DNA from: Ranitomeya imitator
Lineage: Eukaryota
Assembly: GCF_032444005.1 (NCBI RefSeq)
Contig: NC_091283.1
Location: forward strand, 29,450,001 to 29,514,000
Direction of reading: 5' to 3'
DNA length: 64,000 nucleotides
Shown: positions 1 to 64,000 of the stretch, in pieces
Numbering within the stretch: position 1 is the stretch's first letter
How the letters are laid out: each line of letters starts with the position of its first letter
Made by a program: the position numbers and the translations under genes
Notes under the pieces: generated by a model
Database searches by the model: none
What the model saw: only the letters and a program-made list of their open reading frames with translations
Told to the model about the DNA's origin: nothing

Positions 1-3000
1 CTTACACTCCTCACCTCTGTGAGCATGCTACTAATTTCCATCGTTCAGAGCATATACAACAAATATCACGAGGTGCGTATATGTGCGGGGACGGGGCACA
101 GATCACTGTATGTCATAGATAATAACCATTCCCTTATGGGTCTATAATCATTGCACCTAATACTATTGATTATATTTATTATGCTTAATTGTTTTTGGGT
201 AATTAGACAAACTGCAGATTTGGTGCGGATTTTCACTACAGATTTTATCCTTTGAAATTGGCATCAAAATCTGCATGTAACGTGGATTTCATTGCAGATT
301 TGCTATGAAATCCATAGCAGAAAAAGTCTACGGCCTTTACTTTTCATTAAACTTTTTAAATTTATTTTAGTTGCTCATTTTTACTGTTGTTACCATCTTT
401 AGACAATTGGGGTATGGTCACAGAGTGTTTTACATGAATTTTGAAGCAGATCCGCTTCCAAATCCAATTCAAAAAGTATTTCAAGAGTATATTAAGTGGA
501 TTTTAATGTGGATTTTTAAGTGGATCATTTTCAAAATCCATGTAAGAATAAACATCTGTGTGAGCATGCTCTTATTAGGTTTCGTGCACGTGGTCGTCTT
601 AGGGCTCCATATCATTCGGAGCTGGCATAAGGCTCCCATAAAGGTGCATAATCAGAGCAATAAAGACCTTAGGAACATGTAAAATACTCTGGATACATAA
701 AAATGGCAGCAGAGCCTTCCCACAATATATAGTAGATCTGAACTGTTTTGGACTAGATGACAGTATTTTGGAATATACTCTTTTGACCACAACCAACAAA
801 ACCACTGGTGTGAAAAAAGGATAAAAAAGGTTTATAGCGATCCCATGCATTACTTGACACCATTTCAATCATCTGAGCTACATGATGAAACTGTACAACA
901 CAGGCACTTCACAGGAAAAGAGACAAACTACTATCACAGTTACTGATGATGATTAGACGGCTCCTGTCATACAGTTATCATGTAGAAGAGGGAAACATGT
1001 TTTTACTTGAGTGTTTAAAGTATTCTTTGCACAAATATGTATTTTCTAATCTACAAAATGGACTGACTTATTTTTTTAATTTCTTCTCTCAGGATCTTGT
1101 GAAGAAGGTGCAGGATTCGATTGCCCGGTCAAGTGATCTCGCAAAAGAGATTATCGAGTCGGTTAAAACTGTGCAGAGTTTTGCTGCTGAACAAGAAGAA
1201 GTGAACAGATATGAAGAGTCCCTAAAAAAGACTCACAATCTGCAGATGTGGAGGGACATGACCACAGCTCTGTGTGACCTGTTAATAAGGGTGAATAAAC
1301 ACGTCGTATTCCTGGTGGTTACCGTACATTGTGTATGACGAGATGGCTGCCCATATTCACACTTGTCAGATAGGACATGTCTTCCGGCTTGGCTTCCGCT
1401 GTAGAATTTGCGTGAAATCCAACCACAGTCCACATCTGAGAAGTGCAAATCCACAGCAGAACAGGAGCAGAAATCCAGCCTGACCATCACATTTTTGCTA
1501 AAAATTTTTGCCTCTACATCCACAAGAACATTTGTGAGGTCAGACCCTGATAATGAGGAGATGCCGGGCTCACAATCTCTGTTCTTGGATGGGACTGAAG
1601 TCCGGGCTCTGTACGACCACTTATGTTCCCTCTCCTTGTCTGTATGGACCTTGTGCACTGGGCGCAGTCATGGGGAACAGAAAAGGGCGAACCCCAAACT
1701 GTTCCCACAAATCTGGGAGAATTAAGATTTCCTTTCACTGGAACTTAGAGACCAAGGACAATGCCTGATAACATCCCCATAGCATTGTCCTCCTCCACCA
1801 TCTGCACAATGCCGTTAAGGGGTAACGTTCTCATCTTCAAAGTTAGATGTGGTCTCAGCCACAGCGTGAAAAAACGACCTAAATGTGAGTGATATCTGTG
1901 CTGATGCTGGTGATTAGCTGTGTACCCTGACGATAAAGATGCTTTTCTTCCCTTCAGATTATCAATCGGGGGTCGCAGGTTTCCATATTATGCTATGGAC
2001 ATACATTAATCCTTGAGGGAGAGATGACCACCGGGGCGATGGTGTCCTTCATCATGTACCAGATGAAGTCTAGCAAGTGCATACAGGTACGAGACTAAAG
2101 AAATCACAATGGTGCATGTTTTCCAAAGTCAGTATGTTCACAGCTCTATACACCGCGTAGTGCCAGTTCTCTGGTACTTCAGCCCTGGTCCTATTGAAAT
2201 AAATGGGAGTTGAACATTAGTACACAAAACTGTTCACTACGCAGTGGGATCAGTGGGATACCCCCGGTATAGACACTGCCACGTGACATTGGTGTTGACC
2301 TTTTTTCCTCCATTGTTTTTAGAGCCTTATTCACATGCTCAGTGAGATAACCCATTCCGCAGGAGTCGCCTCCAAGATCTTTCAGTACCTGGATCGGGAG
2401 CCTAAGATCTCCACATCAGGATCACTTTGCCCAAAAGATTTACGTGGTGAATTTGAGTTCAGGAACGTCACATTTTATTATCCGTCCCGTCCAGACACCC
2501 CGGCCGTGCAGGTGAGTGTGCGGAACACCTTGTATTTTATACACCTTACATAATGACAGCTATCTCCTGGCCCCCCACACACGTAGTGGTTTGTGAGCCA
2601 AAAACTACGTGTCTTGTTACTGAGCTGAGCCCAATGATCCTACTCACCATAGAGAGCCGGCGTTCCCATCACATCCACCAGTTAATGTGGCGTACCAATA
2701 GAGCTCATACTGGAATGAAATAGTATTAGGCTGGGCCCCATAAAGAGCTATGTGTGAAGGGGGCTGGCTGACTGCTCATTTCAACAGCCTGGCCAGCCCC
2801 CCTTCTCTATGTGTTGGCTTTGTTAGAGAAGGGGGCTGGCTTAGCTTTCATGTGAGCAGTTTGCTTCTGCACAAATCTCTGCCCTGCTCTGAGATCCGGG
2901 ACCCTTTCCTATGTAAATTAGTAAGTTCCATCCCGAGTCTCATTGTGTGCGTCACTTTGACACCTCACATACTTTCCATACGTGTCCTGTTCTCTCATCT

Positions 3001-6000
3001 CCCCTATCATTTATTTTACGTCTGACAGGACTTATCCTTCAGTCTTCCCCCGGGAAGCGTCACCGCTCTTGTTGGACTCTCAGGAGGGGGGAAGACGACC
3101 TGTGTGTCCCTCCTGGAACGATTCTACGAGCCCCGGAATGGGGAGATCCTTCTCGATGGGAGACCGCTGGCTGAGTACGACCATCAGTATCTGCACAGTA
3201 AGGTAGGACTGGTATCAAAGCGCAGACATCCGGAGCATCGACCGCACACAAACCTCCAGCAGCTGACGGTCATTAATTTACATATTAATGTTTCCAGCTA
3301 TGTTCCTCACTATGTAACCCAGAATATTGTCCGCCCCCAGGATCACCTGCTTTATATCACATATTTCATGGAGCCTTCATATTTATACATGGATGATGTT
3401 ACTGATTGTATACGCTTCATTTATACGATCTGCTGGTTGTGTGCTTAGCGCTCCTTTAGTTCTGGGGCTCATTTATCGCCATTGTCCTTCTGGAAAAGCC
3501 TCGCTCCATTACCACCATTGTCACCAGTATCAGATCGGTGGTGGTGCTGGGTGTCGCCGCTTCGTAGGTCTCGTAGCCCCAGGATGTAGATTGTGTACAG
3601 AGCCGGAACAGCTGGGTACAATGTGTTATGGCCGTTCTCTGTACTGCAGCTCAGCTGCCAATAACGTGAATGTGATCTGAGCTGCACTTCCTGCGACCGG
3701 CCATAACACGGTGTAAGGAGCGGTGGCCTTCATGGCTCTATACACAGTGTACTTGACAAACAGCTTATCGGTGGCGTATCAGTCGGATATTGATGATCTA
3801 TCTCAAGGAAAACCCATCAATTTCATAATTCTGGACATCCCCTTTAATAATAATAAAGTAATCGTTGATCAATCTTTGTAAAGTTATGAATCTTTGTAAT
3901 ATATTCCATTAGTTTATGTTTCTTCCTTCTGTCTTGGTCACCACGCTGAAAGTGCTGGTTTGTCTGCCCAGTTCATGCAGTCTTGGTAGCTGTTATTACA
4001 GCAGAAAAAGGGGCAGCAGCGTTTACCTGCCCCGGTCTCATAGTTTAGTGTGAGGACCCTTGACACGGGGTGTGAGATTACATATCTTGTCAAAAATATT
4101 CACCAATCCCTCATATATTATGTGCTATATATTTTTTTTTGCAATTTCTTTTACAGGGTGCAGCCAGGCCCAACATTTTTTGGCCTTGTAAACGAGGGTG
4201 TCAGCACGGTGATAAAGAAAGAATGAATTAAAATAAGACAATGGAGCATATAACAACGATTCATAACGTTACAAAGACTGATCAATGATTAAACAAATAA
4301 TCATCATTTTATTTCTATAGCGCCAACATATTCCGCAGCACTGTACATTTAGAGGGGACTTGTACAGACAATAGACATTACAACATAACAATAAACACAT
4401 AAATCAACAGATACCAGGAGGAATGAGGGCCCTGCTGCTCGCAAACTTACAAAAAAAATAGTTTAGTTACTTTAATATTAAAGGGGATAGGTTGATATTT
4501 TAATATTTAAAGGGGATGGTTCTTCCTTGGGATAGGTAAAAAATATCCAATTGACGTCCCACACCGCCACCAATAAGCTGTTTGTCAAGATTCATCTATA
4601 TACATAATTGTCTAAGGGGTACTTCCGTCTGTCTGTCTGTCCTACTGTCACGGTTATTCGTTCGCTGATTGGTCTCGGCAGCTGCCTGTCATGGCTGCCG
4701 CGACCAATCAACGACGCGCACAGTCCGAAAGAAAATGGCCGCTCCTTACTCCCCGCACTCACTGCCCGACACCCGCATTCACCCTCCAGTCTGCCCTCAC
4801 ACAGGGTTAATAGCAGCGGTAACGGACCGCGTTATGCTGCGGTGTAATGCAGTCCGTTACCGCTGCTATTAACCCTGTGTGACCAAGTATTTTTACTATT
4901 GACGCAGCCTATGCAGCACCAATAGTAAAAACATTGCATGTTAAAAATAATTAAAAAAATTAAAAATGATGATATACTCACCTACACCGCCTTTCCCGCT
5001 CCTCGCTATGCAAACAGCACGTTCCGGTCGCATGGATGGTGTGGCAGAAGGACCTGCCATGACGTCACGGTCATGTGACCGCGACATCATGACAAGTCCT
5101 GTGCGCCTGCGCGAAAAGGACCTGCCGTAACGTCACGGTCATGTGACCGCTACACAGTCATGTGACCGCGACGTCACGGCAGGTCCTGCACTACAAGGAC
5201 CTTGCCGCTTGCAAGTGGCGGGAGAGTGGCGAGGAGCGGCAAAGGCGGCGGATGGTAAGTATAGCAGGACTTCCAACGGGCCTTCGGAAGGTGAGTATAG
5301 GATTATTTTTTTTTTCCGTCTCTATGCTACGTGGCTCTGTGCTGGGCAATATACTACGTGGCTGGATAATATACTCCGTAACTGGGCAATATACTACGTG
5401 GCTGGGCAATATACTCCGTAACTGAGCAATATACTATGTAACTGTACGTGGCTGGGCAATATACTATGTGACTGGGCAATATACTACGTGACTGGGCAAT
5501 ATACTACGTGACTGGGCAATATACTACGTCACTGGGCAATATACTACGTGGCTGGGCAATATACTACGTGGCTGGGCAATATACTACGTGACTGAGCAAT
5601 ATGCTACGTGGCTGGGCAATATACTACGTGACTGGGCAATATACTACGTGACTGGGCAATATACTACGTGTTTGGGCAATATACTACGTGACTGGGCACT
5701 ATACTACGTGACTGGGCACTATACTACGTGACTGGGCACTAAACTACGTGACTGGGCAATATACTACGTGACTGGGCAATATACTACGTGGCTGGGCAAT
5801 ATACTACGTGGCTGGGCAATATACTACGTGGCTGGGCAATATACTACGTGACTGGGCAATATACTACGTGGCTGGGCAATATACTACGTGACTGGGCAAT
5901 ATACTACGTGACTGGGCAATATACTACGTCACTGGGCAATATACTACGTGGCTGGGCAATATACTACGTGACTGGGCAATATACTACGTGACTGGGCAAT

Positions 6001-7879
6001 ATACTACGTGACTGGGCACTATACTACGTGACTGGGCACTATACTACGTGGCTGGGCAATATACTACGTGACTGGGCAATATACTACGTGACTGGGCAAT
6101 ATACGTGACTGGGCAATATACTACGTGACTGAGCAATATATTACGTGGCTGGGCAATATACTACGTGGCTCTGCTATATACTACGTGGCTGGGCAATATA
6201 CTACGTGGCTGGGCAATATACTACGTGACTGGCCAATATACTACGTGGCTGGGCAATATACTACGTGGACATGCATATTCTAGAATACCCGATGCGTTAG
6301 AATCGGGCCACCATCTAGTAACTTTATAAAGGCTGAGTAATAATGAAATAATAATAAAAAAAAGTTTAGTTACTCTTTAATAGAGATGTGCAACCTCGAA
6401 CTCAAAACAAAAACTCTGAGCACAGATTTCTCCCGGATGTCCATTGCAATGTTTGGCGTTTCGGGGGAAGTCCGGAAAGGGAGAAGAAGAGAGAGATAGA
6501 GGGAGAGAATTTTCTAGCTCAAAAGTTCAGGCCCCCATTGTTTTCATTGGTTCTGGTTCCATTTTGGATACAGTTCTGGTTCCAACCTTTGGAATAAAGT
6601 TCGGGTTGGATACCAGAACCCAAACTTCCACAGGTCCGCTCATCCCTATTCTTTAGGCATGTTAATGAGATATTTTTAATTCTAAGTACAGTAGCTGCAA
6701 ACAATATACTGATAATGTTCCTTCCAGGTGGCGCTGGTTGCCCAAGATCCGGTTTTATTTGCTGGAACAATAAAAGACAACATCACTTACGGACTCATCA
6801 GCAAAAGCAACGAGCAAGTGACAGAGGCAGCAAGGAACGCGAAGGCGGAGAACTTCATCAGCAACCTGGAGCAGGGCTACGACACAAGTAAGTGATACAA
6901 GCATTACATTCCACAGCCGAGATAAAAGATTTGTATTTATATTTTATATACACTATCATTACGGTGCGCAGTGCATTACGTATGAATGCCTTCCTGATGC
7001 AGGACTTAATAGCACTCGCTACGTTGGGTCTCCATGTCTGCAGCAGGCTCTGTAGCTGCGTCATACAGCCAGCATCTGCCACTAACAACAGCGACCAGCT
7101 ACCTCTGATCTCTGCGGTTTAATTATTTACATGCTGCTGTCAATCACTGGTGACATTGTTACTTTCATAAAAGTCTAATTTATCAAAATAAAAAACAAAT
7201 GAACCCACAAAGAGAAAAAATATCAAAATGCCAGATGTTGTTTTTCATCCGTTACTCCATACACAGCACTGGCCACAAATCTAGAGGTCGGAAGGTGTCT
7301 CCTATCAGGAGGCCTCATGTACATTAGGTTCTCCCACTTTCTGGCAAAAAATCATCAGGTTTTTACCGTAACGGTTCTGTCCCCTATCTACATTATTGTG
7401 CAGCATTTTCACGTCTGACTCTTGTTTTGACTTTTTAATCAGATTATTCTTAGATTCTTTGATTTCCTGTTTCCACAGATGTTGGAGATAGCGGGGCTCA
7501 GATGGGGGCCGGGCAGAAGCAGCGCATCGCCCTCGCTCGGGCGCTCGCCCGGAAACCTAAGTTACTTATTCTGGATGAAGCTTCCAGTTGTCTGGATGTA
7601 GAAACGGAGCACGAGGTGCGGTACGACGCTGGCCGGATCGGGGGGCTGCGGTCTGTTACTGTCCAACATTAATATATGTGTCCTCCACAGATCCAGCAGT
7701 CTGTGCAGAATATCCCCGGCCTCTCCGTCCTGATCATCGCTCATCGGCTGCGCACGGTGCGAGAAGCGGACCAGATTCTAGTTCTGGACAGAGGTCGGGT
7801 GGTCGAGCGCGGAAATCACACAGAGCTGGTGAAGAACGAGGAGGGAGCTTACTATAAACTCCTGAAGAACGGCGACTGA
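1..7879 (+). CDS. TAP2: Antigen peptide transporter 2, copy A (5'-partial: exons 4-11)
   Basis: Exons with GT-AG boundaries: <1-72, 1093-1290, 1958-2086, 2323-2511, 3029-3202, 6728-6887, 7479-7615, 7691-7879 (TGA). Sizes 198/129/189/174/160/137 fit the TAP exon pattern and the frame is open throughout. Walker [11 protein letters not shown]-loop AQDPVLF, degenerate signature MGAGQ, Walker B LLILDE and H-loop IAHRL form the TAP2-type combination. Confidence 0.93.
4300..4450 (-). mobile_element. LINE (L2/CR1-clade) 3'-end fragment
   Basis: 'atttctatagcgccaacatattccgcagcactgtaca' resembles the reverse complement of amphibian/fish L2-type 3' ends; a similar piece occurs at ~48885-48925. Confidence 0.4.
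4595..6318 (+). mobile_element. Non-autonomous Helitron carrying a 20-bp minisatellite
   Basis: A|TC 5' end at 4594/4595; subterminal hairpin cccgat-N8-atcggg (6288-6307); CTAG|T 3' end at 6318/6319; no TSD. The same family occurs at 44465-47976. Confidence 0.8.
5343..6267 (+). repeat. 20-bp minisatellite (ctgggcaatatactacgtg[g/a])n inside the Helitron
   Basis: Directly visible tandem array of roughly 45 units. Confidence 0.97.
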
Positions 7880-10460: not shown

Positions 10461-10473
10461 AGTGATCAGGAAT

Positions 10474-12728: not shown

Positions 12729-13459
12729 TTGCGCGGTCACTGCTGCTCTGCCTCCTTATAGCAGCCACCTCAGAAGAGCCTTTCACTAAACTTTGAAGAC
12801 AATATCTGCCTAGTAACAGATGATGAGTATAACTGACTGCAATTCTATTGGTTGCAGCATCTAACATTGTCATTACCCAGAGACTTATCATATAATGTGT
12901 AGGGGAAGCAGGCGCAGTATGTGTGAGCATGCGCAGAATAGGGGGGGACAGGCGCAGTATATACTTTTATATACCTTGATGTTTTCTAGAATACATTTGG
13001 GGATATAATATGTGCATGCAATTCATCCATGACTCTACAGTCAGACGGACCCCAGTGATGAGTTTATAGGGGATAACTTACAAACTTGGCACAAGCCTTT
13101 TTAATAACAATGAGGTACCGGAGGGCAGAAAGGAACCAGGAGATTATTACCACAGTGTGGACTTAGAAATGCGCCCTAATGGCGGAGGAGGGAAGAGTCA
13201 GCTCTCTGCTCCACCATTTGATCACAGCAGGCACAATGATATCACTACACCGTTTCAGCTGTGGGAGGAGCATACAACACAGACTACAGCAGCTTATCAT
13301 GGGAAGGGGAATAAGTGCATCGGGGCATGTCAATGCACTTGAAATACAAAGACCATGTGGATTGACACGCCCCCAGTGCACTTCCAGCCTGATCTGCATA
13401 TGGCATTGAATCTATGCAAAAAAAAAAAAATCCAAACGTATGATGGTGCTGAAACATTT

Positions 13460-16927: not shown

Positions 16928-17889
16928 CAAGGACTGAATATTGGCCCAGGTGGCTCATGTACTCTAGACCGTAGGTTCTCAACCCTTCAGGTAGATGACA
17001 TGTCTCTAAGTGGAATCTATGCTGCCCAGTGTCAGATCATAACTTCAGAGGTATGTAATTTGTTTCAGTAGGAACATTGAGAAACACAAATCCAGATTAC
17101 GTGGGCCTCACGATTTATACTACTCAGCCTGCAGCATTTCTCCATCATCTGGAGGAAGGGTGGATGGCGTGAAACTAGAGACATGGCACGGGTCCACCAC
17201 ATTGGCCTTCAAGTTTCAGCATGGAGTGATTGTGGCGGTGGATTCCCGTGCGTCGGCAGGACAGTATATTGGTGAGTGGTTGCTAAATACCTTTTACATT
17301 AGAACTTAATTTCCAAGTGATTTAGTACTAGCCATGGGTGACCGATTACTTCCATAAAATGATTCCCATGCATCATTTTCCCCACAGCTACACTGAAGGT
17401 TAACAAAGTGATTGAGATAAACCCGTATCTGCTGGGCACCATGTCCAGGAGTGTGGCAGACTGTCAGTACTGGGAACGGCTTCTCGCCAAGGAGTGCAGG
17501 TGTGTTATATAATACCGATAACTGCATATTAGTGAGTATGATTATGGAACGATCGTTTGCTCAATGACACTGTCCAATAAATCAAAAACCTTTATTTCCA
17601 TTTCCTTACTCATATTTGTAAGAGCTTCTTTCCTAAGAAAGATTTTAGGAAGTTTGGGCCTAACAGTGCAGATTCCCTTCTCAAAGCGGCACTGAGAACG
17701 ACACAACACTGTCTCTGGACCAGTGACAAACTTTACTCATTCTCGAGGACCAATCACTGGAATAAAGCCTTAACATCTCAGCCTCTGGTTACATGTGCAG
17801 AAGCCACACTCTGTTCTTCACCCTCAGGTCCACACCTAGACGGTCTTGCACAATGTCCGGTCTCAACACGCATCAGTCACATTTCACTT

Positions 17890-18704
17890 AGGGTATGCGC
17901 ACACGCTGCTGATTTTGCTGTGGATTCGCAGTGGATTTCACGCTGCGGATTCGTAGCAGTTTCCCATGCGTTGTACAGTACCATGTAAACCTATGGAAAA
18001 CCAAATCCGCAGTGCACATGCTGCAGAAAAAAACGCCCTGAAACGTAGCATTATTTATTCCGCAGCATGTCAATTCTTTGTGAGGATTCCACAGCGTTTT
18101 AGGCTGTGTGCACACGATGCAGATTTGGTGCAGAATTTTCTGCATAAAATCTGCACTAAATCTGCATCTCCTGGCAGAATCCGCAGGTGCGTTTTTTATG
18201 CGTTTTTTGTGCATTTTTGATGCGTTTTTGATGCGTTTTTTGTGCACAAATCTGCACAAAAAAACACATCAAAAACGCATCAAAAACGCACAAAAAACGC
18301 ATAAAAAACGCACCTGCGGATTTCTATTATGGAGGGGTGCAGAAACGCTGCAGAACTGCACAAAAGAAGTGACATGCACTTCTTTGAAATCTGCAGCGTT
18401 TCTGCGCAGATTTTTCTGCACCATGTGCACAGCTTTTTTTTTTCACGTTGATTTACATTGTACTGTGATCACAGTGCAGTTCTGCAGCGTTTCTGCTGCA
18501 GAAAAATCTGCTGCAGTTCTGCACTAAATCTGCATCGTGTGCACATACCCTTACACCTGCTCCTCAACAGGAATCCGCAGGTGTAAAACCACAGGTGGAA
18601 TCCGCACAAAAACCGCGGTAAATCCGCAGTGCGGTTTACCTGCGGATTTTCCAAAATCAGTCAGGAAAAATCCGCAGAATAATCTGCAGCGTGTGCACAT
18701 ACCC
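17890..18704. mobile_element. Harbinger-type MITE with a second related MITE (18102-18549) nested inside
   Basis: Outer TIR tta|GGGTATGCGCACAC...GTGTGCACATACCC|tta; inner tta|GGCTGTGTGCACAC...GTGTGCACATACCC|tta. Confidence 0.75.
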
Positions 18705-20449
18705 TTACACCTCAGGCCTTTGTCTCCTGCAGTGACACATTATTCACTCACAGTACAAGCGCTCTCGGATCTTGACTCCGCACCCCTGGCCAGCTTTTCA
18801 GATGATAGTCACTTGCCTCGCTCTTGGTGTCAACACCTCTCAGGTGTCTTGTCAACCTTGCTGGAACACCACAATATGCTTAGACTTTCTCCGGCTTTCA
18901 CTCACTATGGTTGGGCAACACTCTTTACTTTTTTGTTACCGCTTACAGATTCATCTGCCAGGGGCATTCACAGAGGTAACTTAGCCATGGGCAGCACACT
19001 GTATCTGATTAATCTACCTGTCCCTAACAGCTTGCCTTTTTTGCCTCATCACATTCAGCCATTATTGTTACTTTGAGAAATAATTTGAGAATTTTGTTCA
19101 CTTCATTTCGGAATGTGTTTAAAAATTAATTTGCAATTTACTGATCATTGTATGGTTACCAAATTTTTAGCTTATTCCCACCTTCATCTTTCATGGTGGA
19201 AATAACTCCATCCAGGCTTTAACCACAGGTGGTGGGGCTACAGAAGTGGCTACCCTGTGGTCATAGGTCCCATTCATTTCTATAGCCGATCTCAGCTGTT
19301 TTTGGAAATCCATCTCCAGTGGTCGATGCCTGGATGGAGTTATTGCAGCCATAAATGGTTGAGGTGGGAATAAACCATTCATTTTTTATTGTGTTTATTT
19401 TACACATTTTGTGTCCTAATTTTATTATTCAGCATTTTTTTAACACTTCATTAGGACGTTGTAATATATTGAAATGAGTCTAGCTATGTTCGTATCTGCA
19501 CCGGAGACTTGCAGATTCCAGATTTGATAGGAGATACAGAACTGTCAAAATTACTGACCCAATGTTGGGGCAAAAGAGATCCCACTATAAGTCAATGGGG
19601 TCCTTTGTGTGCTGGAGGTTTCCTTTGACTGTTTTGGCTTTCATTATAGACAGAAGCCGCAACGCACATGTGAATAGAGGATATGTACATTTTACCTAAT
19701 ATCCACACATTCCTCTTTATATCAGGTTATACCAGCTGCGGAATAATTCCCGGATCACGGTGTCGGCAGCTTCCAAACTCCTATGTAACATGATGCTTGA
19801 GTACAGAGGTACAGGACTGAGCGTGGGCAGCATGATCTGTGGCTGGGATGAGAAGGTAATAGGCTTGGAACGATGATTAGGCTGCAGAATTGCTTCATTA
19901 CCAGTTGGCAAATGAACCAGAATTTGCAGGAGACAGAATTTAACATTACACGTCTTTCTCATGTCCCTAAATGTCCAACCGTGGTGCTCAAAAACCTCAT
20001 AGAGTGCTGTGTTCAGACTATCGGTATTTCTCTGAAGCGATTGGTATTAAATTATGGTTAAAATATACTAGACACAGCAATTTTCTTTCATGATTTCCTG
20101 AATATTCAAGAAAGCAACAGTGCGGTTCTGCCTTTCTTAGGATATCTGTGGGTGCAGAATTGTTCTGCATCTAAATGAAAAATGATAATTTTCCATCTCG
20201 ATTTTTTATTTTCGTTTATTACTGTGAGAGTAATAACCAAACAGCTCAAAATGTGCAAAGTACAATTATGACATTTCTATTAAAACCTCAGTCACCAATA
20301 TAGTAATATGGCCGTCCTTCTTCTCAATAACAATCAATAGCTCCATCCATGGAGTCTGTGGACGATCAACTTTTTGGGTAGAACCAACCACAGCCCCATA
20401 CACTTATCAGGGAGGTAACTGTTCTGCTTCACTGTTACAACACCTCCCA

Positions 20450-23400: not shown

Positions 23401-24050
23401 GTGTTCTGTACATAATACTGACGATGAGGAGCGATGGTGTGTTCTACACATAATACTGACAATGAGGAGTGATGGTGTGTTCTGCACATAATACTGACAA
23501 TGAGGAGCGATGGTGTGTTCTACACATAATACTGACAATGAGGAGCAATAGTGTGTTCTATACATATTACTGACGATGAGGAGCGATGGTGTGTTCTATA
23601 CATAATGCTGACGATGTGGAGCGATGGTGTGTTCTGCAGATAATACTGACGATGAGGAGCGATGGTGTGTTCTACACATAATACTGACGATGAGGAGTGA
23701 CCGTGTGTTCTGCACATAATACTGACAATGAGGAGCAATAGTGTGTTCTATACATAATACTGACGATGAGGAGCGATGGTGTGTTCTATACATAATGCTG
23801 ACAATGTGGAGCGATGATGTGTTCTACACATAATACTGACGATGAGGAGTGACGGTGTGTTCTGCACATAATACTGACGATGAGGAGTGACGGTGTGTTC
23901 TATACATAATACTGATGATGAGGAGTGACGGTGTGTTCTACACATAATACTGACAATAAGGAGCGACGGCGTGTTCTATACATAATACTGACAATGATGA
24001 GCAGCGGTGTGTTCTGTACATAATAATGACGATGAGGAGCGGCGCTGTGT
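20450..24050. repeat. 38-bp minisatellite (cataatactgacgatgaggagcgatggtgtgttctata)n in PSMB8 intron 4, split by a CR1
   Basis: Direct tandem array on both sides of 21418-22630. Confidence 0.97.
21418..22630 (+). mobile_element. 5'-truncated CR1 LINE (RT C-terminus, uninterrupted ORF 21415-22521)
   Basis: YLDFSKAFDTVPH, GVPQGSVLGP and FADDTKL RT motifs; (ATGTTACT)n 8-bp 3' tail; GAGTG target duplication (21413-21417 / 22631-22635). Confidence 0.95.
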
Positions 24051-32146: not shown

Positions 32147-32186
<40 letters not shown>

Positions 32187-37363: not shown

Positions 37364-37420
<57 letters not shown>

Positions 37421-43400: not shown

Positions 43401-43445
43401 ATAGTCCACCCCGAGGAGGCAGCACAATGAGCAGACGGGATGCAT
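28478..43445 (-). CDS. TAP1: Antigen peptide transporter 1, complete, 715 aa
   Basis: Exons: 43445-42962 (484), 42265-42151 (115), 41497-41367 (131), 41288-41083 (206), 40333-40136 (198), 39715-39587 (129), 39107-38919 (189), 38822-38649 (174), 31297-31138 (160), 29367-29231 (137), 28702-28478 (225). Total 2148 nt, all GT-AG and in frame. Canonical LSGGQ plus Walker B LILDD (D for the catalytic E) is the TAP1 hallmark. The start codon follows an acceptor at 43449. Confidence 0.95.
29460..30740. repeat. 18-bp minisatellite (cacagagaacatcagcc[a/g])n in TAP1 intron 9
   Basis: Direct tandem array of ~70 units; explains the long ORFs on both strands. Confidence 0.97.
32184..33829 (+). mobile_element. 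Tc1 DNA transposon, decayed transposase
   Basis: TA|CAGTTAGGTCC...GGACCTAACTG|TA with TIRs over 200 bp. Transposase fragments ([30 protein letters not shown]) carry a premature TGA at 32613-32615 and a frameshift near 32945. Confidence 0.93.
33855..35461 (-). mobile_element. Full-length Tc1 (DD34E) transposon with intact 340-aa transposase ORF
   Basis: TA|CAGTGGGGCAAAAAAG...CTTTTTTGCCCCACTG|TA with ~210-bp near-identical TIRs; ORF 35094-34072. Confidence 0.96.
34072..35094 (-). CDS. Tc1-like transposase
   Basis: [16 protein letters not shown]..., GAPRK linker, [14 protein letters not shown] and SPDLNPIE, with exactly 34 residues between the second D and the E. Confidence 0.93.
35467..37370. 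repeat. ~1.9-kb foldback palindrome centred at ~36415
   Basis: The left arm 35467-36410 is the imperfect reverse complement of 36425-37370 throughout. Confidence 0.92.
36339..36500. promoter_or_regulatory. Three CTCF-consensus motifs at the foldback centre
   Basis: CCAGCAGAGGGCGC on the minus strand at 36339-36352 and 36411-36424 (14/14 match to CCASYAGRKGGCRS); CCAGCAAAGGGCGC on the plus strand at 36487-36500 (13/14). Confidence 0.6.
41600..42125. repeat. 53/46-bp minisatellite in TAP1 intron 2
   Basis: gctgcagtat recurs every 53 nt (41621, 41674...) and later every 46 nt; G-rich on the plus strand. Confidence 0.93.
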
Positions 43446-44019
43446 CGCCTGATAACAGAGAGAAAATAGCACGAATAAGACTGTGATTATGTAATTATGG
43501 CGGACTATAGATAATGAAGGCGTCATGGAGGGACAGAGGAAGCCATCTCCTTCCGACTCACCGCCTAGATGCAGTGGTCAGCACTTAGTGCAGTAGCTAA
43601 GGGGTTAAACTCCCCAAACCAGTGACTGTGGTAAAATACAGCCCACAGACAAACAAATTAAATGACGCCTGTGGTACAAGGCGATTATCGAGGTGATCAA
43701 GTGAGCACAGGTTCAAGTACTAGTAAAAGATGTAAAAAAAATAGTTACACATTTTTTTTTAGAAACGGCAAAGAAAAATTAATTTTCATGTTCATGTCAC
43801 ATAATGTAAAAAATAGAGTTGAGTGAAAAGATTTGCAGGAACCCGGTCACATTGGTGGTCGTTGGCCACCAGATCCAAATCCTGTGGATCTTCTCCTACC
43901 TACCGGCATGGCGCATTTTCTGGTTTGTGAGCTCGGGGTCATGTCATGAAATCTCCTGGCCGACCAATCAGAGGAACTGTGGATATCGGCAGGTAGGAGG
44001 CAGCTGCTCTCGTAGCCAA

Positions 44020-51695: not shown

Positions 51696-51738
<43 letters not shown>

Positions 51739-54173: not shown

Positions 54174-57100
54174 ATGATTTCCTTATGTTTTCTTCCACTT
54201 CTCATCTTGCTGGACTCATCACTCACGTACATAATATCCAGCCTTGTCTTCATATATTATCCTGTAGATCTCCTTCTCGCGGTGTGGCTGGTCTACCTTA
54301 TTAAAACTCCGATACTTGTAGTGATATCCAACCTCCTGCCTCGTCCACGCTGGATCTCCTCCCGCTTGCCCTTCGCTCTAACCCTTGGCTTTGCGCCTCC
54401 TTTGTACCAGACCCTCAGGTTCTTTCTCACCTCTCAGTCTCCAGAGTTATCCTCTGTTTTCTCCAGCTCTCTCCTCTTCCATTTGCCTCTGCCATTGTCA
54501 TGTCTGGTCTGGGATCTGATTTTACCTCCCAGTAACACAAAGGAAACTTCCGGCAGAGATGAACGAGAACAGACAGACAAGAAGAATTTTACCAGACTTG
54601 TCAAACTTTCGAAGCGGGATTGGCCGTACCTATCCTCGGCTTTTGTCTTCCTTTTTCTGGCTTTGACATGTAAGTTTTGTTAAATAATTTCATCTTTTTC
54701 AGTGATATAACTTTTTTCTGCAAACTTTCTACAAAAGGCAGGGAATGGAAATCCCTACATAGCCGAGGAGAGCGGCTCCTGGTGCAGCCATTTGTCTTAC
54801 ATGACAAAAATAACTGATCTCCCGGGAGAGTCTCTCCATCTTAATAATGGAGAAACATAGGATCTTCCATGTTCTGTAATACAGTTGTTTTTCAGCCGAT
54901 CATTAGTCATCCGATGACGAGACAGTAATTATATGTGAAGAGGTAGTTGTATAAAGAAGGAATCTGATAGCAGGGTTAGACATGGTCAGAACATTTCAAC
55001 AGGTTGAATATGTTGTTTAGACTGAAATATACTGTATACGATATGGAAAGTTCTGTTCTTCTACGGACAAAAGTAAATATCTTATCGTTCACAGTTGAAA
55101 TGTGGGTTCCTTACTATATGGGACGGATGATTGACAACTTGTCCAACAACTACAGGGAGGCCGAGTTCCTGGAGGCTATAATTTATATGGCTGTGTTGAC
55201 CATCTCCAGGTGGGTGAGACACACGACAAAGGCAGAACATGTAGACTTCTTGGGCCTCATGATTAAACTAGAGAACACAGAAATTCAAGGTCAACCAACA
55301 GTCAAATTTCAGCTGTAATTTTTCCTGTGGAGGCTTGACCTTGAATGGTTGATATAAGCACTTTTTTTGTGTGCATTACTTTTTAGTAGAGTTGGACAGG
55401 ATTTGCACGGACCTCCAGTCCAGTCCCCCATTGCAGTCTTCACCACAGTGCACAGCATTCTGGGCTCTTCTTTCACCATCTAAATCCTGTGACGTCACGT
55501 TGTGCATCGCACCACTCAAGAAGTGCTAGTAAGTGCAATAAGTACCAAGGATGTCCGGCACAGATGTGAAGTCTGCCGTGGAGGACCAGACTGGATGCCA
55601 CACCAGGGAAGAGAAAACCTTCCTGCTCTATTTTTCACGTATGGGCCCATTGTGGTATATTAATTCTTGCCCAGTTATTCCCAGGACAGACATTTACTAT
55701 TTACTTTATTGAACATAATTACAATATACTTTCAATGACCGCTTTATTAGAAACATCGGACCTCTCACCATTAGAGCCGAAATGAAGACCCCTTCCTGTC
55801 AGTCAGATTGGGAGTAGTAATAATGGTCTGTAGGTTTTCATAGCTCCATTAATTCATGTAGATGGATGAACCCTCCCTGTCAGGCTGATGGAGGTGGAAT
55901 AATGGTGGAGGAAGGTTTGCTTGGCACACTGGTTCCTCTGATACCTGTGGACGAATGACCCCTTCCTGTCAGGTAGATTGAGATTGAGAAATAGTAATTA
56001 TGGGTGAACGTTTTCTTGGTGCACCATGATCACCTGATACCTGTGGATGGATAATTCCTTCCTGTCAAGATCGTGGAGGTGCAGTAATAGTAGGAAAGGT
56101 TTTCTGGGCAGGAGCCCCTGATACCTGTGGATAGATACTAGGACAGCAGTAGGACTTACTTGAGTACAATGTCTGATCCTCTGTTCATGGCGGCTGTTTC
56201 CTCTATGGCAGCAGGACAATGCCTCAAGCCACAAGGATCGTATAGTTATAGATTGCATCTACATATAAGGCAGTGAGCTTTTTCTTCTTCCTGGCCTTTA
56301 CATTTCCCAGATCTTAATCCTGTAGAGCATCTCTGGAACAAAGTACAACAGGCCGTAGACAGCCTGTCAGTACCTCCATCTAATGATTTAGTCCACATGA
56401 CTGATATTCCGGCAGAACGCTCTAATCACCTAGTGGGTTTTATACCACCAGAAATCGCTAAAGGCAGAAGAAGGTCTAACGCACTACTAGATGGGTGTCA
56501 GTAATAAAGTGGCCATTAATTCTATAAATATTTCTACATGGATACAGACATAATATTGGATATTGATATGTATCTTTTTCTTTATTTAGCACTATTTCTG
56601 CAGGCTGCAGAGGAGGACTCTTCATCTTCTCCATGCTTCGCCTCACCAGACGTCTGCGACGTCTTCTTTTCCGCGCGTTCATTAGACAGGACATCGCCTT
56701 CTTTGAAACCACTAAAACTGGTAAAGTATAATACTGTAACTTGTGAGACACACAACCTTGTATACACATATGTCCTAGGGTACTGCTATGGGGGCAAACA
56801 TTATGCCTGACACTCTGTAGGAAGATATCCGCTCTCTTGTCATCAGAAAGGCTTGAGAGTAGAATTTTGAATTTTTATGTGTCCTTTATTATCATTGATT
56901 TTATTATATACTATCGGCTTTGGTTTATATAATAATGCAGTCACAGCAGCTTGCTCCTGTTCACACTTGCTGCATTCAGATGGGAGGTGCTGATCAGTTT
57001 TTTGTTTTTAGGTGAATTGAATACGTGTCATATATACTGTATATGTAAAACAAAAAAATGCCCTAGTTTACATTTTGCTTTTTTTAATTTTTGGGGTATA

Positions 57101-58495
57101 GACTTTGAGCAATAATACTCTATATCCTCCAACAGAAGCCTCTTATACATGTCACTACATAGACACATACCTGCAGAAATCGCCCAGTGATTCCCATTGT
57201 AATAAAGCCTGATTTAAACTACCATTTTTATTCCGGGGTCCCTATCAGTCTACTCTTTCCTGAACAGCAAAAATAAAAAGGAAAGCCCCCATATCGGCCC
57301 ACTGGTTGGCAAAAATCATACGATTACGACTTAGGCTGACTGTATGGAATGGCTAAATTTGGCACGTGTGTTATCAGACTAAAAATCAAATGAAAACCCA
57401 CAGCGATCCCTTGATCACAGACAATATTAAGCTCATATTTTTACGAACATTTGCGACTGAATTTAGTCAATTATAACATTACATTTTACAGAAAGACCTC
57501 AATCATACATCACTTATTTTAATGTACAAGAAAAACTGACTGAGCTTCATGAGTTGTGTCACGGATCCCTACTCCGCGGAGTCACTTATTCGTCACGTGC
57601 CTGCTCTCACACGTGACTTGGGGTTGCGCCTGCAAGGGTTAATCTATCTCCCCACTCTCAGTCCCAGCATTCAAGCTCTGTCCTATGCTGTAATGGGAGC
57701 ATAAGTCACACCGACCCAGGCCACACACCCGCTCATATGCGCTGCCACCACTAATCGAATACACAGGCGATGAGTCCCTGGAACTAATAATACTAATAAA
57801 AATATGTCTATCACTCATAAGGCTCACACACTTTTTGGCTATGGATTCTTTAGAACATTCAAGGTTCAACTTGTTAAAGGTTTATACTTTAATAGCAAAA
57901 GTTCAATGCTTACAATAAGAAAAAGGTATAAAAATATGATAATAAAAAGACATACGACTTATGCAAACAATGTCAAAATAAACAGGAGAAAACTTACAGA
58001 AATCATCTAGCTGGTAGTTGCTTTCTGCTCCCTGAGGGGAAGGAGGGGGGGGGGGGGTGAATGGAGTTGGAACACATCAGCTTCTCAGGCCGCCCTCACA
58101 TGTGAACACAATTCTCTGTCTGCAGCCTAAATTTATAACTTTGATCTGAGGTCAGGCTTCTAGACCGGCCCCTCAGGCCAATATCATAACTGCTGCCTGT
58201 TTGATTGGGCCACGGCCACGCCCCCAATGAATATATTATTTCTCTTGTGGAGAGGTTCTCAGGGATAGATTACCTCCAGCCACAATTTAGCATCTCCCCT
58301 CCAAGCACTCAGAGGTGTCAAGTGTTCCTTTGTTCTTGGCCTTAGGCAGACCTCCTGGTGAGATTTGGAGACAGAGGATTTATTCATCGCAAGGAAGTAC
58401 CTATTAACACCTAGGTGTGACTTGCCTTCAGGACAGATGCTACATTATCACTAGTCACACATATAACCCTAGACATATGTCACTACCCACATATC

Positions 58496-58529
<34 letters not shown>

Positions 58530-61365
58530 TATTTCACCACAAGTTGTTTTTAGCAGTATGTTTTGATCAGCATTTTGACAGAATTTCATCACTTTTTCTC
58601 TGATCAGAAAAAAAAGAAAAAAGTTTATCTATCTTTTCCTATCTATCAATACGTGACAAATAGACACCACTTGGGTGACATGCGGTCCGATATTTTCATG
58701 GTCCATAGAGCTCGGATCAATATCGGACGAGTCACAATTTTGCATGGACCACAAAATTGCAGATATGTGAAAAACATGGATATTGTCTCTTCAGAGAGGA
58801 AGATGACTAGAACTTTAGTGCCACCTATAGGAAATTGCAATCCTACAAGTCAGTATCCACTCTCTAAGGAGCTTTGTCACATGACTTAGGATGAAAGACA
58901 AAATCTCAATTTGCAGATACTGTGTTTCAAGGTACTGCCCCTCGTCAGTGCAAAGTGTGAGATCTGGTTTGGCCGGGTGAGAGGTGTCTGACCGGGATCC
59001 AATGAGTAACGTTCCGCCTTGCGGAGATGGATAGCACTCGTATGTGAAAAACTGACGTGCGAATGAGCCCTTAGAAATGAGTTAATGCACAATTTATTCT
59101 TCTCCGACAGGTGACATCTCCTCTCGACTATCAAACGACACGTCTCTTGTGAGTCGCTCTATTGCGGCCAATGTGAACATAACCCTACGGACATTGATTA
59201 AATGCGTTGGTCATTACCTCTTCATGCTGTCTCTGTCTTGGCGTCTTACACTCCTCACCTTTGTGAGCATGCCACTAATTTCCATCGTTCAGAGCATATA
59301 CAACAAATATCACGAGGTGCGTATATGTGCGGGGACGGGGCACAGATCACTGTATGTAATAGATAATAACCATTCCCTTAGGGGTCTATAATCATTGCAC
59401 CTAATACTATTGATTATATTTATTATGCTTAAATGTTTATGGGTAAATAGACAAACTGCAGATTTGGTGCAGATTTTCATGGCAGATTTTATCCTTTGAA
59501 ATTGACATCAAAATCAGCATCAAAATCTGCATCTAACGTGGATTTCATTGCAGATTTGCTATGATATCCATAGCAGAAAAAGTCTACAGCCTTTACTTTT
59601 CATTAAACTTTTTGAATTTATTTTAGTTGCTCATTTTTATTTTTGTTACCATCTTTAGACAATTGGGGTATGGTCACAGAGTGTTTTACATGAATTTTGA
59701 AGCAGATCCGCTTCCAAATCCAATCCAAAAAGTATTTAAAGAGTATTTTAAGTGGATTTTAATGTGGATTTTTAAGTGGATCATTTTCAAAATCCATGTA
59801 AAAAAAAAAAACCTCTGTGTGAACATGCTCTTATTAGGTCTCGTGCACGTGGTCGTCTTAGGGCTCCATATCATTCGGAGCTGGCATAAGGCTCCCATAA
59901 AGGTGCATAATCAGAGCAATAAAGACCAATAGTAACATGTAAAATACTCTGGATACATAAAAATGGCAGCAGAGCCTTCTCACAATGTATAGTAGATCTG
60001 AACTGTTTTGAACGAGATGAAGGTATTTTGCAATATACCCTTTTGACCACAACCAATAAAACCACTAGTGTGAAAAAAGGTTTATAGTGATCCCATGCAT
60101 TACTTGACACCATTTCAATCATCTGAGCTACATGATGAAACTGCATGGACTGTACCACACAGCAACTTCACTGGACATTAGACAAACTGCTATCACAGTT
60201 ACTGATGATGATTAGACGGCTCCTGTCATACAGTTATCATGTAGAAGATGGAAACATGTTTTTACTTGAGTGTTTTTTAAGTAGTCTGTATACAAATTTT
60301 TATTTTCTAATCTACAAAATTGACTGACTTTATTTTTTTAATTTTTTCTCTCAGGATCTTGTGAAGAAGGTGCAGGATTCGATTGCCCGGACAAGTGATC
60401 TCGCAAAAGAGATTATCGAGTCGGTTAAAACTGTGCAGAGTTTTGCTGCTGAACAAGAAGAAGTGAACAGATATGAAGAGTCACTGAAAAAGACTCACAA
60501 TCTGCAGATGTGGAGGGACATGACCAGAGCTCTCTACCTCCTATTAATAAGGGTGAGTAAACACGTTGTATTCCTGGTGGTTACCGTACATTGTGTATGA
60601 CGAGATGGCTGCCCATATTCACACTTGTCAGATAGGACATGTCTTCCGGCTTGGCTTCCACTGTAGAATTTGCGTGAAATCCAACCACAGTCCACATCTG
60701 AGAAGTGCAAATCCACAGCAGAACAGGAGCAGAAATCCAACCTGACCATCAAATTTCTGCTACATCCATAAGAACATTTGTGAGGTCAGACCCTGATAAT
60801 GAGGAGATGCCGGGCTCACAATCTCTGTTCTTGGATGGGACTGAGGTCCGGGATCTGTACAACCGCTCATGTTCCCCCTCCTTGTCTGTATGGACCTTGT
60901 GCACTGGGCGCAGTCATGGGGAACAGAAAAGGGTGAACCCCAAACTGTTCCCACAAATCTGGGAGAATTAAGATTTCCTTTCATTGGAACTTAGAGACCG
61001 AGGACGATGCCTGATAACATCCCCATAGCATTGTCCTCCTCCACCATCTGCACAATGCAGTTAAGGGGTAACGTTCTCATCTTCAAAGTTAGATGTGGTC
61101 GCGGCCACAGCGAGAAAAAATTACTTAAATGTGACTATCTGTGCTGATTAGCTGTGTACCCTGACGATAAAGACGCTTTTCTTCCCTTCAGATCATCAAT
61201 CTGGGGTCGCAGGTTTCCATGTTATGCTATGGACACACATTAGTCCTTGAGGGAGAGATGACTACCGGGGCGATGGTGTCCTTCATCATGTACCAGATGG
61301 AGTCTAGCAACTACATACGGGTACGAGACCAAGGGAATCACAATGGTGCATGTTTTCCAAAGTCA

Positions 61366-61402
<37 letters not shown>

Positions 61403-62481
61403 CACAGCTCTATACATTGCATAGTGACTGTTCTCTGATACTGCAGTCCTGGTCCGAACATTAGTACACAAGACTGGCCACCACGCAGTGGGATACCCCC
61501 GGTATAGACACTGCCACGTGTCTCTGGTGTTGACCTTTTTTTCCTCCATTGTTTTTAGAGCCTTATTCACATGCTCAGTGAGATAACCCATTCCGCAGGA
61601 GTCGCCTCCAGGATCTTTCAGTACCTGGATCGGGAGCCTAAGATCTCCACATCAGGATCACTTTGCCCAAAAGATTTACGTGGTGAATTTGAGTTCAGGA
61701 ACGTCACATTTTATTATCCGTCCCGTCCAGACACCCCGGCCGTGCAGGTGAGTGTGCGGAACACCTTGTATTTTATACACCTTACATAATGACATCTATC
61801 TCCTGGCCCCCCACACACGTAGTGGAAAACTCCTTCAAATAAAGAGCAGTTTGTGAGCCAAAAACTACGACTCTTGTTACTGAGTTGAGCCCAATGATCC
61901 TACTCACCATAGAGAGCCGGAGTTCCCATCAGATCCACCAGTTAATGTGGTTTGCCAATAGAGCTCATACTGGAAAGAAATAGTATTAGGCTGGGCCCCA
62001 TAAAGAGCTATGTGTGAAGAGGGCTGGCTGACTGCTTATTTCAGCAGCCAGGCCAGCCCCCTGCTCTATGTGTTGGCTTTGTTAGAGAAGGGGGCTGCCT
62101 TAGCATTCACGTGAGCAGTTTGCCCCTCCACACATCTCCCCTGGGTTCTGAGATCCAGGACCTTTTTCAATGTACAATTAGTAAGTTCCATCCCGCGTCT
62201 CATTGTATGCATCACTTTGACACCTCACATACTTTCCATATGTGTCCTGTTCTCTCATTTGTCCCTTGATTATATTCTTCCCCTATCATTTATTTTACGT
62301 CTGACAGAACTTATCCTTCAGTCTTCCCCCGGGAAGCGTCACCGCTCTTGTTGGACTCTCAGGAGGGGGGAAGACGACCTGTGTGTCCCTCCTGGAACGA
62401 TTCTACGAGCCCCGGAACGGGGAGATCCTTCTTGATGGGAGACCGGTGGCTGAGTACGACCATCAGTATCTGCACAGTAAG
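54174..62481 (+). CDS. TAP2: Antigen peptide transporter 2, copy B (3'-partial: exons 1-8)
   Basis: Exons 54174-54669 (496; ATG after an acceptor at 54133), 55095-55209 (115), 56590-56720 (131), 59111-59316 (206), 60355-60552 (198), 61192-61320 (129), 61559-61747 (189), 62308-62481 (174); in frame. Contains GCRGGLF, GDISSRLSND and RALYLL, typical of TAP2. Confidence 0.94.
57557..58491 (-). mobile_element. Possible solo LTR (TGT...ACA termini)
   Basis: Starts tgtcacgg and ends ctacccaca before a (TA)n tract; no TSD confirmed. Confidence 0.3.
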
Positions 62482-62703
62482 GTAGGACTGGTATCAAAGC
62501 GCAGACATCTGGAGCATCAACCGCACAGAAGCCTCCAGCAGCTGACGGTCATTAATTTATATATTAATGTTTCCAGCTATGTTCCTCACTATGTAATCCA
62601 GAATATTGTCCGCCCCAGGATCACCTGCTTTATATCCCATATTTCATGGAGCCTTCATATTTATACATGGATGATGTTACTGATGTATACACTTCATTTA
62701 TAC
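59245..62703 (+). repeat. Paralogous copy of window positions 1-3426 (segmental duplication)
   Basis: Exons and introns align continuously, with substitutions and small indels, until the CR1 insertion at 62704. Confidence 0.95.
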
Positions 62704-63333: not shown

Positions 63334-64000
63334 ACATACATAGTAACATAGTAACATAGTTAGTAAGGCCGAAAAAAGACATTTGTCCATCCAGTTCAGC
63401 CTATATTCCATCATAATAAATACCCAGATCTACGTCCTTCTACAGAACCTAATAATTGTATGATACAATATTGTTCTGCTCCAGGAAGACATCCAGGCCT
63501 CTCTTGAACCCCTCGACTGAGTTCGCCATCACCACCTCCTCAGGCAAGCAATTCCAGATTCTCACTGCCCTAACAGTAAAGAATCCTCTTCTATGTTGGT
63601 GGAAAAACCTTCTCTCCTCCAGACGCAAAGAATGCCCCCTTGTGCCCGTCACCTTCCTTGGTATAAACAGATCCTCAGCGAGATATTTGTATTGTCCCCT
63701 TATATACTTATACATGGTTATTAGATCGCCCCCTTATATACTTATACATGGTTATTAGATCGCCCCTCAGTCGTCTTTTTTCTAGACTAAATAATCCTAA
63801 TTTTGCTAATCTATCTGGGTATTGTAGTTCTCCCATCCCCTTTATTAATTTTGTTGCCCTCCTTTGTACTCTCTCTAGTTCCATTATATCCTTCCTGAGC
63901 ACCGGTGCCCAAAACTGGACACAGTACTCCATGTGCGGTCTAACTAGGGATTTGTACAGAGGCAGTATAATGCTCTCATCATGTGTATCCAGACCTCTTT
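63334..64000 (-). mobile_element. CR1 LINE of the same subfamily as 21418-22630, with an internal 34-bp duplication
   Basis: Near-identical reverse complement of 21990-22630; tandem duplication 63697-63730 / 63731-63764 breaks ORF2. Confidence 0.93.

Follow-up and report, generated by a model that had tools for sequence, protein, structure and literature searches.

Does the class I region within a poison frog's major histocompatibility complex (MHC) carry two TAP2 genes on one chromosome, and would both of them still work? This question is raised by a stretch of 64,000 nucleotides from Ranitomeya imitator (NCBI RefSeq assembly GCF_032444005.1, contig NC_091283.1, positions 29,450,001 to 29,514,000 of the forward strand), which is referred to as the window in the following, whereby all coordinates are window positions. 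Genes were identified by motif scans as well as by Pfam and PDB sequence searches, which were carried out for each exon separately. The window contains, in this order, TAP2A (exons 4–11, plus strand), a copy of the immunoproteasome gene PSMB8, here designated PSMB8' (plus strand), TAP1 (minus strand), and TAP2B (exons 1–8, plus strand). We consider it fairly probable, though by no means certain, that this arrangement represents a genuine duplication at the DNA level in an anuran MHC class I antigen-processing cluster, in which TAP2A is functional and PSMB8' is dead, and we give some further weight to variants of this reading.

The first-pass annotation of this DNA had claimed that base 1 of the window aligns with base 59245 and that TAP2 exons 4–8 occur twice in the same orientation together with their introns. 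Both self-BLAST of the window and global alignment reproduced this. Self-BLAST yielded two matches on the same strand, one between 1–2131 and 59245–61365 (92.2% identity, E = 0) and one between 2251–3426 and 61486–62703 (91.9% identity), with an offset of 59,244–59,277 between the copies. By self-BLAST together with global alignment, copy A of the duplicated segment was placed at 1..3426 (plus strand), where it is truncated by the window start, and copy B at 59245..62703 (plus strand). The overall identity between them is ~92% with gaps. Both copies carry the terminal part of exon 4, followed by exons 5, 6, 7, and 8, of an ABC half-transporter, introns included. Since the introns are retained in both direct-orientation TAP2 copies, the duplication would have taken place at the DNA level. 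In the global alignment, 164 of the 2628 aligned intron bases (6.2%, or 6.5% after Jukes–Cantor correction) and 27 of the 762 exon bases (3.5%) are substituted, and there are ~20 indels, whereby the divergence per intron is uneven along the TAP2 segment and ranges from 4.1% to 10.9%. The copy-specific insertions that had been annotated in addition to substitutions and indels were found as well: a (TA)n stretch of 30 bases is present only in copy B (61366..61395, TAP2B intron 6), and the homology ends at 62703, where copy B enters two CR1-type long interspersed nuclear element (LINE) 3' ends in TAP2B intron 8 (62704–63338 and 63339–64000, minus strand), the second of which contains the window end. 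On the other side, exon 4 of copy B starts at 59112, upstream of the base that aligns to window base 1, and the repeat thus probably extends to the left of the window. The window truncates the repeat at both ends, so that the 3.4 kb represent the visible portion only. There is no N anywhere in the window, so the 56 kb between the copies are free of gaps. Beyond transposons and satellites, no further self-similarity was detected within the window by self-comparison.

In order to assign the genes, we used the TAP2 locus of Spea bombifrons as a reference (locus L001, GCA_027358695.2), which is truncated before PSMB8 exon 2 and thus gave no reference for the first coding exon of PSMB8'. TAP2A is visible with its 3' two thirds (1..7879, plus strand), as delimited by Pfam, tblastn with Spea, open frames, AG/GT borders, and ATP-site motifs. 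Its exons are located at 1–72 (exon 4, end only), 1093–1290 (exon 5), 1958–2086 (exon 6), 2323–2511 (exon 7), 3029–3202 (exon 8), 6728–6887 (exon 9), 7479–7615 (exon 10), and 7691–7879 (exon 11, with stop). TAP2B is visible with its 5' two thirds (54174..62481, plus strand), and exons 9–11 lie beyond the window. Its exons were assigned to 54174–54669 (exon 1, from the ATG), ~55092–55209 (exon 2), ~56590–56720 (exon 3), 59112–59316 (exon 4), 60355–60552 (exon 5), 61192–61320 (exon 6), 61559–61747 (exon 7), and 62308–62481 (exon 8). In both genes, Pfam recognized an ABC half-transporter, with ABC_membrane on exons 4–5 and ABC_tran on exon 8. Exon-wise tblastn showed that every TAP2 exon of both copies matches Spea TAP2 at 48–77% identity (57–77% for the TAP2A exons) and always above Spea TAP1. 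In the PDB, TAP2B exon 5 scored 46 bits with human TAP2 compared to 25 with ABCB9 and 20 with TAP1. An exception to the TAP2 best match is exon 4, which scores 64 bits with human ABCB9 and 55 with TAP2. In representative and profile searches, the matches included proteins annotated as TAP2 in fishes, caecilians, salamanders, and two frogs, and a search with the exon 5 reading frame alone gave a single Logan fragment with 77% identity. The exons shared by TAP2A and TAP2B are open, of equal length, and bordered by canonical splice sites, and no stops, frameshifts, or lost splice sites were found in TAP2A in the eight visible exons 4–11. TAP2A exons 8–11 encode a Walker A motif, a degenerate C-loop (MGAGQ), a canonical Walker B motif (LLILDE), and an H-loop (AHRL). 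Compared with LSGGQ and ILDD in TAP1, this set of motifs (MGAGQ/LLILDE/AHRL) displays the ATP-site asymmetry that is typical of TAP. Tandem TAP2 sequences were also encountered elsewhere in these searches. The best representative match, P0001 from Amia calva (1221 amino acids), is a gene model of two TAP2 halves in tandem, and in Protopterus annectens a single scaffold encodes three or more TAP2-like proteins (P0087/P0275/P0276). Tandem TAP2 copies may be widespread outside the tetrapod model species.

The Spea TAP2 locus comprises 25 kb and contains a proteasome gene (plus strand), a 725-residue ABC transporter (minus strand), TAP2 (plus strand), and an MHC class I gene (plus strand). All 11 of the 11 TAP1 exons of the window match Spea TAP1 at 42–85%, each above Spea TAP2, and PSMB8' exons 3–6 match Spea PSMB8 at 71–90%. 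Thus, genes, order, and orientation of the Spea cluster correspond exon by exon to PSMB8' (plus), TAP1 (minus), and TAP2B (plus) of the window. The two loci differ in that Spea has one TAP2 and a unit of ~15 kb, whereas the Ranitomeya unit exceeds 50 kb, is enlarged by satellites and transposons, and is preceded by a second TAP2 upstream of PSMB8'. Judged by gene content and order, PSMB8'-TAP1-TAP2B is the ancestral frog arrangement, and since it matches the Spea cluster in order and orientation, TAP2B occupies the ancestral slot and TAP2A is the additional gene. TAP2B is positioned head to head with TAP1; TAP2A adjoins PSMB8', and no TAP1 is visible in a head-to-head position to it. Neither a second TAP1 nor a second PSMB8 was found within the 64-kb window. 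A TAP2-PSMB8-TAP1 cassette repeated with a period of 59.2 kb, as it had been proposed in the first-pass annotation, could therefore not be confirmed here, as the window holds one TAP1 and one PSMB8 only. Likewise, the intervals between TAP2A and PSMB8' and between TAP1 and TAP2B gave no motif, no match to a Spea open reading frame, and no Pfam domain (136 reading frames) for a class I gene, PSMB9, or another gene.

A 20-bp satellite is common to TAP2A intron 8 (4701–6321, 47 copies) and to the intergenic stretch between TAP1 and TAP2B (44597–47979, 138 copies). Each of the two arrays is preceded by a stretch of ~280 bp, and these two stretches agree at 82%. The satellite was probably carried by a transposon and is probably separate from the TAP2 duplication.

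In order to find out how the two TAP2 copies have diverged, dN/dS was summed over individual exons. Between TAP2A and TAP2B, the synonymous divergence (dS) is 0.060, which is close to the intron divergence, and the nonsynonymous divergence (dN) is 0.029, resulting in a dN/dS of 0.49. Both dS and dN are ~4 times higher in the transmembrane exons 4–6 than in exons 7–8, where dN amounts to 0.011. In total, 16 residues differ between the two copies. Polarization of these differences with ten outgroup TAP2 proteins assigned about nine replacements to the TAP2A branch (F to S, P to L, R to T, Y to C, L to D, L to R, M to I, E to K, and Y to C) and four to the TAP2B branch (S to T, I to V, K to R, and L to V). 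The TAP2A replacements are the more radical ones, with a mean BLOSUM62 score of −1.6 compared to +1.75 for TAP2B (one-sided Mann–Whitney test, p = 0.007, in a small sample of 9 versus 4), and all of the TAP2A-derived replacements are located within the transmembrane exons 4–6. Alignment to human TAP2 revealed a cluster of seven substitutions at 1264..1281 (plus strand), by which RALYLL of copy B reads TALCDL in copy A. The cluster corresponds to residues 373–378 of human TAP2, where human TAP2 and TAP2B both have RALYLL. A donor for a micro-conversion of this cluster was not found within the window. By the same alignment, the exon 5 replacements of TAP2A map to human TAP2 positions ~373, 376, and 377. 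Counting on from this alignment along human exon 6, the exon 6 replacements presumably correspond to positions ~385, 391, 418, and 422. In human TAP2, mutational scanning identified R368, R369, R380, M413, and E417 as peptide-contact residues (10.1101/2024.09.30.615919, preprint). An alignment of 12 outgroup TAP2 proteins has 103 invariant columns, and TAP2A deviates in six of them, whereby all six changes are conservative and three of them are common to TAP2B; this number is within the range of ordinary orthologues. Overall, we read these data as pointing to TAP2A being a working gene, the core of which appears to be under purifying selection, with its own changes in transmembrane exons near known peptide contacts.

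PSMB8', an immunoproteasome beta5i copy of the Val31 type, was located at 17069..27695 (plus strand) by PDB matches, Spea exons, and splice sites. Exon 2 extends from 17135 (or 17069) to 17271, and exons 3–6 are located at 17388–17502, 19726–19855, 24103–24307, and 27604–27695. For exons 2 and 3, beta5i chains of the PDB outrank beta5 chains. Exons 2–6 have canonical splice sites, correct phases, and an open frame to the stop. An ATG at 17000 was considered as the start and rejected, since it is out of frame with exon 2; as a conjecture, an alternative first exon could use an ATG at 16915, a donor at 16949, and an acceptor at 17068. Compared to human beta5i, PSMB8' shows the changes Thr1Ser, Gly47Arg, and Ala49Val and has Val at position 31. 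Spea PSMB8 has Gly47 and Ala49. PSMB8' keeps Asp17, Lys33, and the RD..SGG motif, and it is without the N-terminal nucleophile Thr1 after the Gly-Thr cleavage site and without Gly47, which are expected of an active subunit. Gly47 forms the oxyanion hole. Catalysis depends on Thr1, and the S1 pocket includes position 49 (PMC12983459). Because of Thr1Ser, Gly47Arg, and Ala49Val, the predicted product is probably proteolytically dead, and PSMB8' is likely a pseudogene. The suggestion of the first-pass annotation that TAP2A is accompanied by a dead PSMB8 is thus in agreement with the replacements of the catalytic Thr1, of Gly47, and of Ala49 in the PSMB8 copy between the two TAP2 copies.

Several further elements were noticed around PSMB8'. 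A stretch at 12809..12853 (plus strand) resembles an X1-X2-Y MHC promoter module, with 13 of 14 bases of X1 matching and ATTGGTT as Y box, which is a motif match only. It is located 4.6 kb upstream of PSMB8' exon 3 and 4.9 kb downstream of the TAP2A stop and is the sole such match in the window. The introns 4 and 5 of PSMB8' are filled by satellite arrays with repeat units of 38 bp and 39 bp (20448–21415, 22631–24064, and 24541–26966; ~4.8 kb in total), whereby the 38-bp array is interrupted by a CR1 insertion. The CR1 in intron 4 carries an RVT_1 reverse-transcriptase domain at 21412–22518. Its 3' end (22004–22631, plus strand) and the one in TAP2B intron 8 (63339–64000, minus strand) are 99.6–100% identical, inverted to each other, and 41 kb apart. 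Either this CR1 family is very young and active or the pair underwent a recent conversion.

How could such a locus have arisen and what would the genes do? TAP2A is located directly upstream of PSMB8'-TAP1-TAP2B and would most likely be part of an upstream sister unit. We infer the content of this unit, which is proposed to hold an F-type PSMB8 as well. With ~6.5% neutral divergence and an assumed rate of ~1e-9 substitutions per site and year, the copies would have split very roughly 30 million years ago. TAP2A would have stayed functional as a TAP2, with the one TAP1 visible in the window as its partner. As it keeps the core residues and the ATP-site motifs and has its own replacements in transmembrane exons, it may pump a set of peptides other than that of TAP2B. 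PSMB8' would have lost catalytic competence while being redundant with the upstream PSMB8; a working copy on the same haplotype, if present, would make a dead PSMB8' easier to explain and to tolerate. Accepting this scenario, we infer that the animal carries TAP2A and TAP2B on the same chromosome, that both copies are expressed, and that the peptide specificity of TAP2A is altered. In favor of a real duplication are the gap-free intervening sequence, the unique genes between the copies in the Spea order, and published precedents in amphibians.

A number of observations weigh against a real duplication with a functional TAP2A. The exon 5 donor of TAP2A (GTGAAT) is weaker than that of TAP2B (GTGAGT), and neither a TAP2 protein nor a transcript of Ranitomeya was found in protein searches with an Umbra TAP2 profile, the exon 5 frame alone, and a lungfish TAP2 profile. 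Y376C and L377D of TAP2A hit a motif that is conserved from fish to human, so that they could represent damage rather than retuning. A relative-rate test by counts between TAP2A and TAP2B with eight outgroups was not significant. This result also qualifies an earlier description of TAP2A as drifting and TAP2B as conserved: the more radical replacements in TAP2A and the ancestral position of TAP2B beside TAP1 speak for it, whereas the substitution counts do not. Moreover, the duplication is seen in assembled sequence, and both TAP2 copies are truncated by the window with the unit borders outside. Frog class I regions are known to have old, strongly diverged allelic lineages of the same genes, and two haplotypes joined end to end would likewise place one TAP2 with an F-type PSMB8 ahead of another TAP2 with a V-type PSMB8. 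From the first of these observations it might be concluded that the duplication is real, but that TAP2A is decaying and non-functional, with the radical replacements being damage. Besides the two changes in the RALYLL motif, the weaker donor, and the lack of a transcript-derived protein in the search with the exon 5 frame, this would fit the replacement of E by K at an acidic position that is otherwise conserved, the overall dN/dS of 0.49, and the already crippled neighbor PSMB8'. On the other hand, a dead gene with 6.5% neutral divergence and ~1.2 kb of visible coding sequence is expected to show disabling changes, and TAP2A has eight exons without a stop, a frameshift, or a lost splice site. 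In addition, exons 7–11, which encode the ATP-binding domain, keep the strictly invariant residues except for conservative changes, and the low dN of exons 7–8 speaks against decay as well. Therefore, we regard a non-functional TAP2A as somewhat unlikely.

The other observations concern the question of whether the two TAP2 sequences are copies or alleles. TAP2A, with an upstream F-type PSMB8, and PSMB8'-TAP1-TAP2B could be allelic haplotype lineages of one heterozygous animal, which have been falsely joined in tandem during assembly. An end-to-end join would fit the order of F-PSMB8 and TAP2A followed by V-PSMB8', TAP1, and TAP2B. Haplotypic lineages of class I-linked processing genes have been described in frogs (PMC5824609), and it is well established that PSMB8 occurs in allelic A and F types (PMC7883663, PMC12983459). 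Satellites and young transposons, which could mislead an assembler, are abundant in the region, and an older Ranitomeya imitator assembly has been judged unreliable (PMC10210626). However, there is no N in the 56 kb between the copies, a join would need a chimeric contig within 7.9–12.8 kb, and one of the two supposed haplotypes would be left with a sole PSMB8 carrying Thr1Ser and Gly47Arg. Furthermore, other amphibians have genuine duplications of TAP2 (PMC10210626), and altogether an assembly artifact appears quite improbable. It could also be that unequal crossing-over between two old allelic lineages put both of them on one chromosome, in which case the 6.5% would date the alleles and not the duplication. 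The uneven divergence of 4.1% to 10.9% per intron would be in agreement with such an event, but nothing in the window separates it from an ordinary duplication with subsequent divergence, and we consider it unlikely.

A duplicated TAP2 together with a duplicated PSMB8 is already known from other amphibians, and the Ranitomeya locus would be a further example of this kind. In Leptobrachium ailaonicum and L. leishanense (Megophryidae), TAP2, TAP1, and PSMB8 are duplicated, whereby the gene order in Leptobrachium is Tap2-Tap1-Tap2-Psmb8-Psmb9-MHCI-Tap2-Tap1-Psmb8-MHCI, and in Pleurodeles waltl (Salamandridae) PSMB8-PSMB9 and TAP2 are duplicated (PMC10210626). As in Ranitomeya, the extra TAP2 of these species lies in the amphibian core class I subregion and is interleaved with TAP1 and PSMB8; the difference is that they belong to other families and that divergence and functional state of the copies were not analyzed in the survey (PMC10210626). 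The neobatrachian frogs resolved in the same survey, from which Ranitomeya imitator was excluded, have a single Tap2-Tap1-Psmb8-Psmb9 and no TAP2 duplication (PMC10210626). In salamanders, frequent recent duplications of TAP and PSMB genes as well as a non-transcribed PSMB8 sequence have been reported, and there are populations in which all individuals have both PSMB8 lineages, suggesting a duplication (PMC7883663). That evidence comes from transcriptomes and amplicons without genomic arrangement (PMC7883663), whereas in Ranitomeya it is the genomic arrangement that is seen. The view of the first-pass annotation that the locus would be a distinct way to diversify peptide supply thus overstates its novelty, given the published duplications of TAP2 and PSMB8 in Leptobrachium, Pleurodeles, and other salamanders (PMC10210626, PMC7883663). 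No literature on this locus in dendrobatids was found. The TAP2 alleles cim-a and cim-b of the rat reportedly differ in their selectivity for the peptide C-terminus, which is determined by residues 374 and 380, among others. The differences between these alleles are located in the same transmembrane stretch, equivalent to human 373–385, as those of TAP2A; they are alleles with tested differences in transport, whereas TAP2A and TAP2B have been compared here by sequence.

In Xenopus and other vertebrates, the Val/Ala31 and Phe31 types of PSMB8 are accompanied by different linked forms of TAP2 (PMC12983459, PMC7883663, PMC5824609), which resembles the situation suggested here. The Xenopus forms are alleles at one locus, whereas in Ranitomeya they would be in cis, if the assembly is right, and the Val31 copy is without the catalytic residues. 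It is conceivable, but doubtful, that one chromosome carries in cis the equivalents of Xenopus-style alternative haplotypes, namely an F-type PSMB8 with a TAP2A with a remodeled cavity and a dead Val31 PSMB8 with TAP1 and a conservative TAP2B, whereby one TAP1 would serve two TAP2 partners of different selectivity. If the lineages were fixed in cis in this manner, every animal and not heterozygotes only would get both peptide supplies, which would constitute a fixed-heterozygosity answer to the co-evolution of class I and processing genes. According to the co-evolution hypothesis for the non-mammalian MHC, tightly linked, specialized TAP and proteasome genes limit the number of class I genes that can be served per haplotype. 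Two working TAP2 genes that differ in their transmembrane exons, near known peptide contacts, and share one TAP1 would, if real, be one way round this limit, and TAP2A and TAP2B would provide a natural pair for testing what sets the peptide selectivity of TAP. PSMB8', with its frame kept and Thr1 and Gly47 lost, would document how one old PSMB8 type is discarded once both types are on the same chromosome. If the two TAP2 sequences were mis-joined alleles instead, the practical value would be a warning that the MHC of a reference assembly contains a false duplication.

TAP1, which lies between PSMB8' and TAP2B, was assigned to 28478..43526 (minus strand) by Spea TAP1 matches, PDB, and motifs. 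Its 11 exons are located at ~43.45–42.96k, 42266–42150, 41502–41365, 41289–41077, 40366–40130, and 39718–39584 (exons 1–6) and at 39119–38916, 38819–38646, 31303–31136, 29365–29225, and 28714–28478 (exons 7–11). TAP1 is oriented tail to tail with PSMB8', at a distance of 783 bp. A transmembrane exon has human TAP1 as its top-scoring PDB match, the C-loop is a canonical LSGGQ, the Walker B motif is of the TAP1 type (ILDD), and all exon frames are open. The Walker A sequence (38646–38819, minus strand) is GACDAGKST, compared to GPNGSGKST in human, and represents an unusual P-loop; the ATP site in question is degenerate in TAP anyway. A TAP1 intron contains an uninterrupted Tc1/mariner transposase frame of 366 residues with HTH_SB, HTH_Tnp_Tc3_2, and DDE_3 domains (34075–35172, minus strand), and a second DDE_3 fragment was found at 32945–33451 (plus strand). 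In addition, TAP1 introns harbor an 18-bp satellite at 29462–30741 with 71 copies, which on the minus strand is open over 437 codons, as well as a tandem repeat at 41602–42128 with a 53-bp unit and 10.5 copies that are 96% alike.

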